A stretch of 64,000 nt of DNA from the sequence record PP813861.1. One strand, written 5' to 3'. Shown in pieces: positions 7,667-60,245 of the stretch. Both the position numbers and the translations under genes were made by a program. How positions within the stretch are numbered: position 1 is the first letter of the stretch; each line of letters begins with the position of its first letter. The notes under the pieces were generated by a model that was given only the letters and a program-made list of their open reading frames with translations, made no database searches and had not been told where the DNA came from.

Positions 7667-8197
7667 CTAGAACATCAAAATGCCTACATCAGTATCCTTA
7701 AGTGTTGGCAGGCTAGTAACGATGACTAATTTGATATTACGTTTGGTAATTCCTTCACTAGCATTAATGATAGCTGACATAACCCCATTACCACCTGTAC
7801 GTGCACGCACTGCTTTATCAACATCTTCGGTAATAATAACAGATCCATTTGGAAAACCTCTAATGAGATCAGCGAATTCAGGATGTTCTAAAATATCGGA
7901 CCGATCAGCTAAATAAATTTTATCATCCCAGCCTCGATGATTCAACATTTCTCTAGCGAAGTTTGACTCACTGGTATCGGGTTTACCAAAAATAATTAGT
8001 ACATTAGAACTAGATTCAAAAAATATATCCCAAAGTTCCGCTGGTGTAAAATTGAAGTAAGGATAGAACTTGTGGATATCACTAACTGGTTGATATTCTA
8101 GACATGTTTCTACAGTTGTAGCCAATGTACCATTTGCTGTAAGATGAATCCTCTTAAGATATTTGGATGGTTTATTATTTAAATAATCATTAGGCAT
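7667..8197 (-). CDS. truncated, Walker-A-degenerate AAA ATPase paralogue
   Basis: Aligns to 32678..33778 (IYLADRSDIL/VYLADQDDVL; IITEDVDK/IITEDSDK; LPTLKD/LPTLRD); P-loop reads GKPDTSES. Confidence 0.75.
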   Translation of the reverse strand: MPNDYLNNKPSKYLKRIHLTANGTLATTVETCLEYQPVSDIHKFYPYFNFTPAELWDIFFESSSNVLIIFGKPDTSESNFAREMLNHRGWDDKIYLADRSDILEHPEFADLIRGFPNGSVIITEDVDKAVRARTGGNGVMSAIINASEGITKRNIKLVIVTSLPTLKDTDVGILMF

Positions 8198-8242
8198 TAT
8201 ATTTTCCTTTTTAAATAAATAAGGAAATTAACTATAGTGTTA

Positions 8243-8602
8243 TTATTTACCAATAGATACAATTACCTCTTTTAATTTACCATGGTCATTAATTGCCATT
8301 TGACAAGTGGGACACGGATATGCATCTAATGGCCTACCATCAGAACCGACTCGCGCAACATAGATCCTATATCCTTTTCCCTTGGAGAGGATGATAGAAC
8401 GCAACTCACTATGCATCTCACAACGTAGATCGGACAATCCTGCTTTTAGAGAATAACGTTTCTGAGCAGGATGTGTTTTACCATACATATTTTGGCTTTC
8501 ACTAATGATCCTACCACGTTTATCAGTAATGACTGAATAAACACGTTGACGATGTTTTACATAAGGGATTTCACGACACTTTTCCAAAGCATAGTCCAAC
8601 AT
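8243..8602 (-). CDS. cytidine/dCMP deaminase-like Zn-binding protein
   Basis: HSE...PCPTC motifs; likely start MLDYALEK at 8602 (AGGT RBS) rather than 8704. Confidence 0.75.
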   Translation of the reverse strand: MLDYALEKCREIPYVKHRQRVYSVITDKRGRIISESQNMYGKTHPAQKRYSLKAGLSDLRCEMHSELRSIILSKGKGYRIYVARVGSDGRPLDAYPCPTCQMAINDHGKLKEVIVSIGK

Positions 8603-8645
8603 AATTGATTTACCTATTTGCAATTTAGATAGTAATATCACATTT

Positions 8646-8675
8646 GTAATATACTGTTTAAAATGCTTTAAATAC
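8646..8675 (-). promoter_or_regulatory. phiKZ-type early promoter (TTTAAACAG-TATATTAC subtype)
   Basis: GTAATATA at 8646-8653 on plus strand = TATATTAC on minus strand, directly after a terminator. Confidence 0.75.
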
Positions 8676-8692
8676 AAAAAAATAAAATATAA

Positions 8693-8713
8693 GCCCTCCC
8701 GCAATGGGAGGGC
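8693..8713 (-). terminator. intrinsic terminator
   Basis: GCCCTCCC-GCAAT-GGGAGGGC; 30-bp exact copy at 41358-41387. Confidence 0.8.
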
Positions 8714-8726
8714 ATTATAATAACTA

Positions 8727-9161
8727 TTACAACTTATTCACCATTTTACTTGGTGCTATAACCCAGTGTAAATTACATTTCATGCTTTTATTTTTAAGAG
8801 GTATTCCTGAGATACACACATCCTCTTTAGTTATGCTAATTTTAAATAAAGCTTCCCATTTATTAGCTGTGATGATTTCATCAACAGTGTGATGGAATTT
8901 AAGTGTGTTATCTAATACTGAAATATAAAAGTCTTTATTGGGTTGACCTTTAGTTAAATCAATTATTAACCTATTATTTAATTTAGGTGAAAAAGTTGTT
9001 AATGTACCGTCCTCATTATTTTCTGATATGTAAGTACAACCAGTAACAACAAAGACATTATCATTTATGGCATTAGTATAAATTACTTTCGATTGTTTAA
9101 AAATATTAATTAAGTAAACAATAATTGCTGACAGGATAAGTGCAATCACTACCTCAGTCAT
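8727..9161 (-). CDS. single-pass membrane protein
   Basis: N-terminal VVIALILSAIIVYLI helix. Confidence 0.7.
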   Translation of the reverse strand: MTEVVIALILSAIIVYLINIFKQSKVIYTNAINDNVFVVTGCTYISENNEDGTLTTFSPKLNNRLIIDLTKGQPNKDFYISVLDNTLKFHHTVDEIITANKWEALFKISITKEDVCISGIPLKNKSMKCNLHWVIAPSKMVNKL

Positions 9162-9163
9162 TA

Positions 9164-9538
9164 CTAACCCCTATTAACAAAGATAAAATAATCTCGTAGT
9201 TCACCAGCTAAATCTAATGGTTGATAATTATCACTACCATCATCATAAGGGATATAATCAGCACCTGCTTCTACAGCCGCTAAATATTCTTCCTCACCAA
9301 CTGCTGGAATTAAATGAAACGCTGGGCAATCGTCATTATTGCCATCTAGTATATCTAGCATGCCTGTAATGACACTATCTGCTACAGCCCTGTCCCGATC
9401 AGCTGGCTCTGTAAATTGATCAAGTTTAGAGTTATTGATAGCATTATCACGCATATTGACAACACTACTAATAAATAGTTCTTTAACTTGTTCCTGTGTT
9501 ACAGGTTTAACATTACCATCGCCTTCAAAATAGATCAT
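9164..9538 (-). CDS. hypothetical protein, paralogue of 9583..10269
   Basis: LDGN...P.F.LIP...DL.G.LR motif shared. Confidence 0.75.
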   Translation of the reverse strand: MIYFEGDGNVKPVTQEQVKELFISSVVNMRDNAINNSKLDQFTEPADRDRAVADSVITGMLDILDGNNDDCPAFHLIPAVGEEEYLAAVEAGADYIPYDDGSDNYQPLDLAGELRDYFIFVNRG

Positions 9539-47552: not shown

Positions 47553-48611
47553 TTATTTCCAGAGTGTTTTACCAATTAGATCATTTTCTGCAATGAATGC
47601 ATCTAATTGATGTCCATAGTAAAGTAAACTATGAATTTGTTGATTTAGACGTTCTTTATTTGAACCTAAGAACATCTTGTGCTTTTCACTATCAGGTAGC
47701 TGATCGTAAACTCGTTGGCAGTACTTCTGTGCCACAACCTTACCAGATGCAAGGAAACGATCATCACCTTCGAATAACTGAGGGATAATATTTTCATCAA
47801 GATACTTACTGATTTCAGCATCTAGATCAAAATTAATAGTGTCATCGGTTGTTGCGACAGTATCTTCTTGCTGTTCATCATTCCATGGTATTTCAGAACT
47901 TACACTATCATCAAACTGATCACTAGTTGTAGTTTTAGCTAGTTGTTCATCAAATGATGATTGTTTATTTTTCTGTTTATCACGCAGGAAAATAATTGAT
48001 TCAACAATCTCATTAACAATGATGTCTAGATCGCGATTGGTATCTACAACAATTGAACTAGGTTGATTAATTAAGCGTCCATAACCTTCATCTACTTTAT
48101 TAAAGTAACTGGAACCCTTAGACTCATAATAGTCAAGACCTCGGTCGCGCATTTCAATTCGTTTTTTACGAACTTCTTCAGGAGCAGTTAAAAAGAAAGT
48201 AGCCGGTTCTGGAATAGAATGTAGTGTTCCTTGAAGAATATCCATAAATAGTTTTGATAGGTATGGATTAGTTTCTTCAAAAGGTACTACATTAAGAGCA
48301 TAAGTAGATGCAATGAAACGTTCAGTGATAACGATTTTATCATCTTTTAAAGCAGGTCGAATAATGTTTTCTACATTAAGCATCCTACCTGCACTATGCA
48401 TCAATACATCGAATTCTGGCGGACGAACTTCATCTTTAAATTCTGGCCAAATTAACATTTGTCGAATCTTTTCCGATGTAGCTGTACCACCTGGTTCACG
48501 CATTGCTACTACATCGTAATTGCGCTTACGTAGTTCCTCAACAACCATCTTTGTAACAGTTGTTTTACCAACACCTTCAGTTCCTTCGATACATACAAAT
48601 AAACCATTCAT
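47553..48611 (-). CDS. tmk: thymidylate kinase with C-terminal extension
   Basis: IEGTEGVGKTT, REPGG, ITERF motifs in the first ~205 aa. Confidence 0.92.
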   Translation of the reverse strand: MNGLFVCIEGTEGVGKTTVTKMVVEELRKRNYDVVAMREPGGTATSEKIRQMLIWPEFKDEVRPPEFDVLMHSAGRMLNVENIIRPALKDDKIVITERFIASTYALNVVPFEETNPYLSKLFMDILQGTLHSIPEPATFFLTAPEEVRKKRIEMRDRGLDYYESKGSSYFNKVDEGYGRLINQPSSIVVDTNRDLDIIVNEIVESIIFLRDKQKNKQSSFDEQLAKTTTSDQFDDSVSSEIPWNDEQQEDTVATTDDTINFDLDAEISKYLDENIIPQLFEGDDRFLASGKVVAQKYCQRVYDQLPDSEKHKMFLGSNKERLNQQIHSLLYYGHQLDAFIAENDLIGKTLWK

Positions 48612-50342: not shown

Positions 50343-50372
50343 GTAATATAAATCTCAAATTTTTTTTAATAC
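50343..50372 (-). promoter_or_regulatory. phiKZ-type early promoter
   Basis: Minus strand ATTAAAAAAAATTTGAGATTTATATTAC. Confidence 0.8.
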
Positions 50373-50380
50373 GAAATAAA

Positions 50381-50398
50381 GCCTCCCCGAAGGGAGGC
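50381..50398 (-). terminator. intrinsic terminator, UUCG loop
   Basis: GCCTCCC-CGAA-GGGAGGC. Confidence 0.85.
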
Positions 50399-50405
50399 AT
50401 TTATG

Positions 50406-51098
50406 TCAATTACCACTATAGGTACCTTCAGTACCTTGTTCTTTACGTCTTACGAGGCGTTGATGAATTGCACTAAGAGCACGGTCCATTGAATTAATCA
50501 CTACCTGATTCTCTTCACATGCAAATGGGCCTGCTTGATAACCTTCAAATAAATCTTTAACGATTTTAAGTAGACAGTCAGCAGTTAGGCCATTTACACC
50601 AACTTCTGGAACAAGTCCATTCTGCATTAGGATAACACATTCAGTCAGATTATCACCAGGCATAGCAGCTGGGTTAGTCTGAGCATTATAACCAGTTACC
50701 ACATAACGTTTAGTTGCACCTGATTTCTGATCAATACCACTTGCTTCAATATTTAGACCATTTTCATCAAAATGTTCATGGCCATAAATACCTTGCATAG
50801 TTACCCATCCACCATCTTCTTGATAAATCCAATCTACCCCATTTACATGATAAGTATCACCTGGTTCAGGGTCAGTTGGAAGATCTTTAGTAGTGGTTAA
50901 TGCACGGATACGCGCATATTCTTCAATTGCAATTTGTACATCAGTTGCAGTAATTTTCTTCTCAGGTTCAGTAGCTTCATCTTGTTGAGACTTATCGCTA
51001 CCTTCCTTTTGATCATTATCCATATCGGAAGAATCTACTGTACTTTTAGCTTCTTTACTTTCTAAGGAAGCTAACCACTCAAGATTAGGTTTAGACAT
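50406..51098 (-). CDS. tad1: Tad1-like (Acb2/Tad1 family) immune-signal sponge with acidic N-terminal extension
   Basis: GATKRYVV...ILMQNG...GLTADCLLKIVKDLFEGYQAGPFACEEN...ALSAIHQRLVRRKEQGTEGT matches the recalled Tad1 pattern (FQAGPF..REN...AL.W...R..R..R.V.GT); start at 51098 has GAGGT RBS. Confidence 0.8.
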   Translation of the reverse strand: MSKPNLEWLASLESKEAKSTVDSSDMDNDQKEGSDKSQQDEATEPEKKITATDVQIAIEEYARIRALTTTKDLPTDPEPGDTYHVNGVDWIYQEDGGWVTMQGIYGHEHFDENGLNIEASGIDQKSGATKRYVVTGYNAQTNPAAMPGDNLTECVILMQNGLVPEVGVNGLTADCLLKIVKDLFEGYQAGPFACEENQVVINSMDRALSAIHQRLVRRKEQGTEGTYSGN

Positions 51099-51105
51099 AC
51101 TTACC

Positions 51106-51411
51106 TCAATAAATGAAACCACCAATGTAAAGTGACACTACTACATCGGCAACCCGAGGGTCTTGTGAATATTTAGATTTGACTAGTTTAATAAGTTCGG
51201 CTCGATTTTTAATGAAGCCTAGTTTCTTATTATCAATTTCTTCAGCTTTAATTAGGAAGTCATCTAACTTCTTCTTACTACCCAGTAAATTAATCACCAT
51301 TTGATCAATAACTGCATTAGAATTTGATAGTTTAGTTAATTCTTGTTCAAAAACTTCCTTACGTCCTTCTGATCCAATTAAAGCTAGACCGATCTTTTTA
51401 AGTAGAGACAT
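51106..51411 (-). CDS. hypothetical protein
   Basis: 101 aa, AGGT RBS. Confidence 0.7.
   Translation of the reverse strand: MSLLKKIGLALIGSEGRKEVFEQELTKLSNSNAVIDQMVINLLGSKKKLDDFLIKAEEIDNKKLGFIKNRAELIKLVKSKYSQDPRVADVVVSLYIGGFIY

Positions 51412-51469: not shown

Positions 51470-60245
<8,776 letters not shown>

Follow-up and report, generated by a model that had tools for sequence, protein, structure and literature searches.

Does the last gene of a virion structural operon in a jumbo phage encode a sponge for immune signals that is packaged in the head, matured by protease and delivered with the DNA? The original prediction proposed as much for a minus-strand open reading frame in a window of 64,000 nt (the whole stretch of DNA that was analysed). 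The window is that of the Pseudomonas jumbo phage phiKZ, with DNA 100% identical to AF399011/NC_004629, and the frame is PHIKZ184.

50406..51098, minus strand: PHIKZ184/gp184 coding sequence, 230 aa plus stop, from the list of open reading frames, the sequence and GenBank.

Read from the sequence, the gene starts with ATG at 51098 and ends with a stop codon at 50406-50408. It is annotated as 'structural protein' in the phiKZ GenBank record, and its product is 100% identical to chain I ('gp184') of the phiKZ capsid structure, PDB 8Y6V, which bears out the predicted packaging in the virion. The strings quoted in the prediction were all found in gp184, namely YQAGPFACEEN at residues 187-197, HQRLVRRKEQGTEGT at 212-226 and DLPTDPEPGDTYHVNGVDWIYQEDGGW at 72-98.

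The frame is thus phiKZ gp184, a head protein whose role as a Tad1 sponge is already in print: it was named phiKZ's Tad1 by Chan 2025, by a 2026 jumbo-phage review and in the AntiDefenseFinder paper. Both Chan 2025 and the 2026 review state that gp184 acts against Thoeris and CBASS, with Li et al. (Nature 2024) as their source; the 2023 preprint of Li et al. does not mention phiKZ. Delivery with the DNA had also been predicted, and gp184 has been validated as an injected protein by western blot of a C-terminally tagged form (Fossati 2023). The reading of gp184 as a packaged, protease-cut and injected Tad1 is supported, yet it is already in the literature and not new. The analysis itself shows the protein's identity, its fold, the conservation of its pocket, its capsid-bound wedge and the boundaries of its modules. 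With the phiKZ case known, the value added here lies in confirmation, the limits of the modules, the cut that would free the sponge and the ligands to be expected; new observations are the E195/N202 substitutions, the G-x-E junction, the wedge in PhiPA3 gp096 and the common N-terminal motif.

Searches by sequence and by structure, the latter matching Tad1 structures only, agreed with the predicted likeness of the C-terminal part.

50409..50774, minus strand: Tad1 sponge domain, residues ~109-230, a three-stranded beta sheet plus a two-helix hairpin, from phmmer, AF2 and Foldseek.

Against the PDB, phmmer aligned residues 117-226 with CmTad1 (8kbb, E 2e-6) and CbTad1 (7uav/8kbh/8kbg/8kbe, E 3e-6 to 4e-6), with an identity to the solved Tad1 proteins of only about 19-28%. 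With tblastn, the 'anti-thoeris viral protein' of Bacillus phage Atlee was matched, as was the SBSphiJ7 Tad1 gene (H87; E 4e-4 for this gene), and 2136 relatives were found at E<=1e-3 among 1.84 billion representative proteins. A full-length AF2 model built with 20 sequences was too poor for a fold argument (mean pLDDT 55.8; Tad1 match at TM ~0.4, rmsd ~16 A) and was replaced by a model of residues 111-230 built with 67 sequences (pLDDT 95.5, pTM 0.83). In the latter, strands occupy domain positions 6-12, 19-25 and 43-48, and helices 63-79 and 85-110. Its best 20 Foldseek matches were all Tad1 (E 2e-8 to 3e-6, TM 0.70-0.78), with the next at E ~0.1. The fold is that of Tad1 of Bacillus phage SBSphiJ7 and of the solved CbTad1 and CmTad1 (7UAV/7UAW, 8SMD, 8KBB-8KBH).

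Profile libraries were less informative. Even at E<=10, local hmmscan matched neither gp184 nor its C-terminal domain to PF24729 (Acb2_Tad1_hairpin). The family is listed in the precomputed annotation of a 96%-identical relative (P0001) and of most clade members, and relatives P0058 and P0142 have PF24729 matches below the cut-off. Pfam and NCBIfam scans of gp184 and the C-terminal domain returned only a chance WASH-7_C match (E 0.2), and a PHROGs search of gp184 returned families of unknown function only. The helical hairpin of PF24729 is common to gp184 and to Acb2 (anti-CBASS 2), another cyclic-nucleotide sponge of phages. However, Acb2 is without the Tad1 beta sheet and absent among the Foldseek matches of the gp184 model, and its ligands include cyclic trinucleotides, whereas gp184 is predicted not to bind these.

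That prediction follows from the ligand-binding positions, which were mapped onto CbTad1.

50445..50540, minus strand: predicted gcADPR/cyclic-dinucleotide pocket span, with Y187 at 50538-50540, N197 at 50508-50510, R214 at 50457-50459 and R218 at 50445-50447.
50514-50516 (E195) and 50493-50495 (N202), minus strand: non-conserved cyclic-trinucleotide positions, in the same span as the pocket.

The roles of these residues in CbTad1 and CmTad1 are taken from sections 6-7 of the preprint of Li et al. In the phmmer alignment columns, CbTad1 F82, N92, R109 and R113 correspond to gp184 Y187, N197, R214 and R218. Residue frequencies were computed across 132 Tad1-domain sequences: N197, R214 and R218 were invariant in the gp184 clade, where position 187 was F or Y, and all four positions were nearly invariant in the 108 other relatives. 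gp184 has in common with the solved Tad1 proteins the FQxGxFxxxEN and RxxxR pocket residues, as well as the published role of nucleotide-signal sponge. The cyclic-trinucleotide residues, R90 and T97 in CbTad1 (R88 and T95 in CmTad1, at the trimer interface), are replaced by E195 and N202. Because R90 and T97 are not conserved, gp184 is probably without cyclic-trinucleotide binding. The claim that several CBASS cyclic nucleotides are sequestered thus probably does not extend to the trinucleotides. The first of the two positions was E, D, P or A in the gp184 clade and R in only 11 of the 108 other relatives; the cyclic-trinucleotide site characterises the solved homologues and is not shared throughout the family. 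A phiKZ nlp1 mutant still carrying gp184 needed Acb2 for rescue on cA3 CBASS. The residues that make the contacts of the hexamer, a trimer of dimers, in CbTad1 and CmTad1 also differ in gp184, the CmTad1 interface positions K96, Q98, E99, M102, W103 and K106 aligning with S203, D205, R206, S209, A210 and Q213.

Compared with the solved Tad1 proteins, gp184 has a 108-residue N-terminal extension, and this carries a capsid-docking wedge.

50778..50909, minus strand: capsid 'wedge', residues 64-107 (IRALTTTKDLP...WVTMQGIYGH), a small beta module bound to the inner side of the capsid.

Chain I of the capsid structure (8y6v_I), of which only 34 residues are modelled, matched the beta module of the gp184 model in Foldseek with 100% identity and TM 0.82; judged from the model, these ordered residues probably correspond to about residues 71-104. 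The wedge strands in the full-length AF2 model are at 82-85, 88-92 and 98-100. Within the vertex-binding complex of the capsid, gp184 has gp86 on one side and the major capsid protein (MCP) of hexamer 1 on the other, and the cleavage product is longer than what could be modelled, as the capsid authors noted (Yang 2024). The wedge persists after maturation and is a minor capsid protein of that complex. The N-terminus had been described as propeptide-like, and it is acidic and does carry S/A/G-x-E sites, but it is not merely discarded, since the beta wedge stays behind in the mature capsid. Between the wedge and the last 44 aa of Psa21 gp249, identity is 41%.

Two further segments precede the wedge.

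51057..51083, minus strand: motif LEWLASLES, residues 6-14, with a Trp and, after it, an [S/G]-x-E site, from the 20-sequence alignment.
50910..51056, minus strand: acidic, poorly conserved, predicted-disordered linker, residues 15-63, from composition, pLDDT and alignment.

In the 20-sequence alignment, E13 is nearly invariant and the sequence after it is not conserved. The W...[S/G]-x-E motif recurs in 201phi2-1 gp280, PhiPA3 gp217, Psa21 gp249, RVTF4 and Noxifer_200, and LEWLASLES is a candidate head-targeting or first-cleavage motif. A general head-targeting role for W...[SAG]-x-E was considered and rejected: no other open reading frame of at least 80 aa in the window carries the motif, so we claim it for the gp184 family only. 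The predicted acidity of the N-terminal part was confirmed, with 23% D+E and a net charge of -7 over residues 1-70, and pLDDT is <50 for residues 1-69 of the full-length AF2 model. Both the length and the sequence of the linker differ among homologues.

The S/A/G-x-E sites listed earlier, SLE(11), SKE(14), ATE(42) and AIE(57), are all present, and there are three more, GHE(106), ACE(193) and GTE(222). As the original prediction had warned, such trimers are common by chance. Enrichment was not significant, with seven in the whole of gp184 against 4.6 +/- 1.8 in shuffled sequences (p=0.14) and five in the N-terminal 110 aa against 2.4 (p=0.06). Among the seven, SLE11-13 and GHE106-108 are conserved, and the second of these lies exactly between the wedge and the Tad1 domain.

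50775..50783, minus strand: G106-H107-E108 junction, a candidate gp175 site that fits the S/A/G-x-E rule.

G106 is nearly invariant in the 20-sequence alignment. The junction reads GFE in one relative (P0003), GIE in another (P0004) and GFE in PhiPA3 gp096, and the wedge-only open reading frames of Psa21 and RVTF4 end ...GLYGH, at the aligned H107 or one residue beyond it. A cut after E108 is the likeliest to free the cargo, and at this candidate site it would give a 122-aa Tad1. If the protein were cut only upstream of the wedge, say after E59, wedge and Tad1 domain would remain joined. As to the suggested maturation by protease, gp175 cleavage sites in gp184 are reported at second hand, by Yang 2024, to have been verified by Thomas 2012.

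The prediction placed gp184 after a gp182-like gene; it does not follow gp182 directly, as the immediate upstream neighbour is gp183 (101 aa).

51104..51107, minus strand: GAGG ribosome-binding site, overlapping the gp183 stop and 5 nt upstream of the gp184 ATG, read from the sequence.
50381..50398, minus strand: intrinsic terminator hairpin after gp184, GCCTCCCTTCGGGGAGGC then TTTATTTCGT, from a terminator scan.
50343..50350, minus strand: promoter consensus TATATTAC, in the context TTTGAGATTTATATTACTAGTG, past the terminator and before gp185; the copy nearest to gp184 in a pattern search.

Only 7 nt separate the gp183 stop (TGA 51106-51108) from the gp184 ATG, which suggests that the two genes are co-transcribed. 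The terminator placed behind the gene by the prediction is there, and its hairpin fits the terminator motif that ONT-cappable-seq work reported as conserved in phiKZ. A second terminator-like hairpin was found by the same scan between gp181 and gp182 (53485-53512, minus strand), and therefore the transcription unit may be gp182-gp184. Equally in line with the prediction, the pattern search found no copy of TATATTAC, the predicted phiKZ promoter consensus (PMC7058600), upstream of gp184 as far as the end of the window. By its position, the copy at 50343-50350 belongs to gp185 and marks the unit boundary, and the Psa21 locus has the same arrangement of stop, terminator and TATATTAC. The late-promoter motif TATG occurs at the starts of gp182 and gp184 and was set aside as too short to inform. 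As gp184 is situated behind baseplate and tail genes and its product is incorporated into the head, it is likely to be expressed late.

Taken together, we consider it highly probable that phiKZ's Tad1 is built as a head protein of three parts: a motif with linker, a wedge and a releasable sponge. Residues 1-63, with the motif and the acidic disordered linker, would bring gp184 into the prohead, and the wedge (~64-107) would dock at the inner capsid surface between gp86 and the MCP of the penton-adjacent hexamer. Docking at the vertices would allow up to ~60 copies of gp184 per capsid. Protease gp175 would then cut the protein, the freeing cut falling most likely after E108, and the C-terminal part would exit the capsid with the DNA. 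Residues 109-230 would keep a pocket for Thoeris gcADPR and CBASS cyclic dinucleotides, as in the solved Tad1 proteins. A ready-made sponge could thereby be present in the cell before phage gene expression and absorb second messengers that are not kept out by the phage nucleus. A nucleus-forming phage shields its DNA from nucleases but not from defences that use diffusible second messengers, and a sponge arriving with the DNA would close this gap. Against this reading stands the dose: by our own arithmetic, ~60 copies per virion would supply no more than roughly 100 nM of sites in a 1-fL cell, which is little.

Delivery of this kind has parallels. In phiKZ gp93 and gp162 (PF12699 inner-body/ejection proteins), as in gp184, an N-terminal segment is capsid-bound, gp175 cuts, and a C-terminal domain is ejected. 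They are unrelated to gp184 in sequence, what they carry is a helix-rich domain whose activity is unknown, and their capsid-bound parts are fibre-like, unlike the beta wedge of gp184. IPI* of phage T4 is, like gp184, a small head-borne protein that counters a host defence; it enters the cell with the DNA and blocks GmrS/GmrD before gene expression, its short N-terminal targeting sequence having been cleaved off after Glu by the prohead protease. In contrast to gp184, IPI* is a direct nuclease inhibitor and sequesters no signal; its fold is unrelated, and nothing in it corresponds to the capsid-docked wedge.

Ordinary Tad1 is expressed only after infection, whereas gp184 is packaged and injected. 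In the proposed reading, protection would come from the injected rather than the newly made protein. The sponge could instead act mainly as a newly synthesised cytoplasmic protein, as a stand-alone Tad1 does, its presence in the virion being incidental or a minor head start. Most relatives are indeed stand-alone proteins of ~130 aa (86 of the 166 sequences examined), Noxifer has a nearly bare Tad1 at the same locus (Noxifer_200), and ~60 copies would be few against the amount of signal that an activated TIR or CD-NTase makes. However, injection was demonstrated experimentally, and the conserved N-terminal motif, the wedge and the G-x-E junction make sense only for head incorporation. Moreover, a gene behind baseplate and tail genes and without an early-promoter consensus would probably yield new protein late, after the signalling decision. 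On balance, we regard predominant action by new synthesis as improbable.

Slightly less probable again is that gp184 serves mainly as capsid cement, with a Tad1-like domain that stays in the head in a structural or DNA-related role and natural anti-defence marginal or absent: its place in the vertex-binding complex, the small dose per virion and a cleavage product longer than the 34 ordered residues, which may still carry the Tad1 domain, would all suit such a role, but gp184 is non-essential, transposon insertions being tolerated with no competitive defect (Chan 2025), the Goslar vertex-binding complex is without a homologue, the C-terminally tagged protein was validated as injected, a purely structural role would not require ligand-pocket residues invariant in the clade, and the wedge and Tad1 functions are separable because relatives carry either one alone.

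The preferred reading, a sponge docked in the head and released with the DNA, can be extended to those relatives. Somewhat tentatively, and with the odds a little against it, gp184 could exemplify a portable head-delivery cassette of phiKZ-like phages, in a clade whose ligand range would be narrower than that of CbTad1 and exclude cyclic trinucleotides. Such a cassette may comprise the N-terminal W...[S/G]-x-E motif, an optional acidic linker, an optional vertex-docking wedge, a G-x-E junction and an exchangeable cargo. If this is true, further cargos behind such cassettes would be candidate pre-loaded anti-defence proteins, and the cassette would be usable to load chosen proteins into jumbo-phage heads. 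The module limits, the cut that would free the sponge, the expected ligands and the capsid-docking piece as a movable module with other cargos offer constructs for loading and a route to further packaged anti-defence proteins of jumbo phages. We also considered whether long, N-terminally extended relatives enter heads by means of a piece of MCP; that piece aligns to the region of the MCP insertion (I) domain, which gives no obvious indication of internal packaging, and the idea was dropped. Versions of the proposed cassette were found in several combinations. At the syntenic locus, Psa21 and RVTF4 have the wedge without Tad1. Motif and cargo occur together, with no wedge, in Noxifer_200, PhiPA3 gp217 and 201phi2-1 gp280, the last of which was detected by mass spectrometry. 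In PhiPA3 gp096, a different virion protein, the wedge is followed by GFE and then by another cargo.

Around gp184, 4.5 kb of the window matched Pseudomonas phage phiKZ (AF399011 / NC_004629, 196067–200567) at 100% identity in the opposite orientation; the RefSeq entry names the ORF PHIKZ184 and notes it as a 'structural protein'. The gene order is gp181 (tail-associated lysin), gp182, gp183, gp184, gp185 ... gp188 (thymidylate kinase). Immediately preceding gp184 is gp183: 7 nt lie between the gp183 stop and the gp184 ATG, and the GAGG ribosome-binding site of gp184 overlaps the gp183 stop codon. The ORF was recovered as originally predicted, with every quoted protein string at its place. It and two hairpins were located as follows:

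50406–51098, minus strand: gp184 ORF, 230 aa, ATG at 51098, stop at 50406–50408
50381–50398, minus strand: terminator hairpin, G+C-rich with a T-rich tail, directly 3′ of gp184
53485–53512, minus strand: terminator-like hairpin with a 12-bp stem, between gp181 and gp182, ~20 nt ahead of the start of gp182

The hairpin after gp184 matches the motif seen at 61 phiKZ terminators by ONT-cappable-seq, confirming the terminator proposed there. No copy of TATATTAC, the predicted phiKZ promoter consensus (PMC7058600), was found by pattern search upstream of gp184 as far as the window end, in agreement with the original failure to find such a promoter in front of the gene; the closest copy lies past the gp184 terminator, before gp185. 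The window holds 11 copies (8646 ... 50343), ten of them on the minus strand, a total not above chance (8.1 ± 2.9). Because the hairpin at 53485–53512 separates gp181 from gp182, the tail lysin gene and the gp182–184 group may be separate or attenuated transcription units. The copy at 50343–50350 has the extended context TTTGAGATT-TATATTAC-TAGTG, similar to the 201phi2-1 consensus. The gp188 ORF (47553–48611, minus strand) encodes 352 aa, which seems longer than usual for a thymidylate kinase, with an acidic low-complexity stretch beyond about residue 210.

The C-terminal domain of gp184 was identified as Tad1, as predicted, by both sequence and structure searches. A phmmer search of all PDB sequences matched gp184 residues 117–226 to solved Tad1 proteins (CmTad1 8kbb; CbTad1 7uav, 8kbe, 8kbg and 8kbh) at E 2e-6 to 4e-6, and tblastn against phage genomes matched the 'Tad1' gene of Bacillus phage SBSphiJ7 and the 'anti-thoeris viral protein' of phage Atlee. 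The AlphaFold2 model of the domain, built on an alignment of 67 relatives, had pLDDT 95.5 and pTM 0.83; the best 20 Foldseek matches to it in the PDB were all Tad1 chains (E 2e-8 to 3e-6, TM 0.70–0.78), and the first match after these had an E of about 0.1. The Pfam family PF24729 (Acb2_Tad1_hairpin) is given for near-identical gp184 homologues in a precomputed domain table, but direct hmmscan found no match to it in gp184, its C-terminal domain or its close homologues, even at E≤10; the match of these homologues is thus probably faint and sub-threshold. Exhaustive phmmer with residues 111–230 gave 2136 representative relatives at E≤1e-3. Among relatives P0020–P0166, an N-terminal extension of at least 50 aa ahead of a Tad1 domain that ends the protein was present in 64/166 examined, a C-terminal extension instead in 15/166 (for example P0115, 320 aa) and both in one; the extensions mostly had no Pfam match. 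Three relatives of 346–484 aa with a C-terminal Tad1 domain (P0156, at 8001–9455 of locus L005 from a 252-kb metagenomic contig, P0072 and P0103) had a Pfam PhiKZ_MCP match in their N-terminal part, which aligns with the insertion-domain region in the major capsid protein of a jumbo phage (RP12 ~219–432).

In CbTad1, gcADPR and cyclic dinucleotides are bound by F82, N92, R109 and R113, and cyclic trinucleotides at a site with R90 and T97 (Li et al. preprint 10.1101/2023.11.15.567273). The phmmer alignment placed the four pocket residues at gp184 Y187, N197, R214 and R218. Within the gp184 clade these positions are invariant or F/Y, and they are nearly so across all relatives examined. The trinucleotide-site residues are replaced by E195 and N202, and the hexamer-contact residues of solved Tad1 also differ. 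Since the pocket is kept and R90 and T97 are not, gp184 would be expected to bind gcADPR and dinucleotides, without cA3 or cAAG at the canonical site. A CBASS that signals through cA3 restricts a phiKZ nlp1 mutant in which gp184 is retained, and Acb2 rescues this mutant; its sensitivity is consistent with a lack of cA3 binding by gp184 without proving it.

Virion packaging, also predicted, is shown by structure: the gp184 sequence matches chain I of the phiKZ capsid (PDB 8Y6V) at 100% identity. Just 34 residues of that chain are modelled, and they superpose on a small beta module, the wedge, of the full-length model (100% identity, TM 0.82), which would place them at about residues 71–104. In the capsid, gp184 fills the space that separates gp86 from one subunit of the major capsid protein in the adjacent hexamer, with a large part of gp184 not resolved (Yang et al. 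2024, PMC11297242). AlphaFold gives pLDDT below 50 to residues 1–70, and 23% of these are D+E, so the proposed propeptide-like N-terminus was right as to acidity. It is more than a propeptide, however: with its module resolved in the capsid, the N-terminal half serves to dock the protein there.

The locus between the gp182-like and thymidylate kinase genes had four architectures among related phages.

Proteins at the gp184 locus
phiKZ gp184, 230 aa: N-terminal motif, acidic linker, wedge, Tad1
201phi2-1 gp280, 199 aa: no wedge; GenBank note 'identified using mass spectrometry'
PhiPA3 gp217, 189 aa: no wedge
Noxifer_200, 134 aa: just a short N-terminal stretch ahead of Tad1
Psa21 gp249 (L004 3357–3632) and RVTF4 counterpart (L010 1357–1635), 91–92 aa: N-terminal motif, linker and wedge only, no Tad1

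A terminator and TATATTAC lie behind Psa21 gp249. When the Psa21 and RVTF4 records were searched by tblastn with gp184, neither gave a Tad1 match. Common to gp184 and its counterparts is an N-terminal Trp with [S/G]-x-E a few residues further on (LEWLASLES in phiKZ), a motif in no other ORF of at least 80 aa in the window; conservation does not extend into the linker that comes next. Because the wedge-less 201phi2-1 gp280 was still detected by mass spectrometry, we infer that this motif, rather than the wedge, carries the protein into the head. A wedge module 58% identical to that of gp184, followed by YGFE, also occurs at about residues 187–235 of PhiPA3 gp096 (L009 1943–2908), a 'virion structural protein' of 321 aa encoded in the cluster of inner-body genes; its C-terminal part of ~85 aa is unrelated and could be a second packaged cargo.

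S/A/G-x-E trimers, the cleavage motif of the head protease gp175, start at gp184 residues 11, 14, 42, 57, 106, 193 and 222. The first four are those originally listed, but a total of seven is not above chance (shuffled sequence gives 4.6 ± 1.8; p=0.14) and is uninformative by itself. Maturation by the protease is published: Yang et al. 2024 (PMC11297242) state that the gp175 sites in gp184 were verified by Thomas et al. 2012. The Psa21 and RVTF4 proteins terminate in ...GLYGH(V), aligning with gp184 H107, one residue before E108 of the G-H-E site, or one later, and a G-x-E after the wedge recurs in metagenomic homologues P0003 and P0004 and in PhiPA3 gp096. We infer a gp175 cut after E108, perhaps after E13 too; from the sequence, the former would leave a 122-aa product, the size of a stand-alone Tad1.

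The original prediction of a packaged, delivered sponge is correct and had been published earlier, since capsid wedging, cleavage, injection and Tad1 identity are all in the literature. That gp184 is injected was validated by Fossati et al. 2023. Chan et al. 2025 named it Tad1, described its N-terminus as wedged in the capsid and its C-terminus as cut loose by the head protease for injection, and found transposon insertions tolerated without fitness cost; a 2026 jumbo-phage review and the AntiDefenseFinder paper agree. Our modest additions would be the modular reading ('targeting motif – wedge – G-x-E – cargo') and the prediction that cyclic trinucleotides are not bound, of which no statement was found in the literature examined (for Li et al., the preprint). 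By its position, gp184 would be expressed from the gp182–184 unit, presumably late, and incorporated into the prohead through a putative targeting signal; the structure shows it in the capsid. Its wedge would dock at capsid vertices, as in the structure, in at most 60 copies by arithmetic. After the reported gp175 cut, at the likely sites E108 and perhaps E13, the Tad1 part would be ejected (reported, Fossati et al. 2023) and bind gcADPR and cyclic dinucleotides in its conserved predicted pocket, an activity reported second-hand. About 60 molecules in a ~1 fL cell would give roughly 100 nM binding sites, a dose that could absorb no more than the earliest signal molecules.
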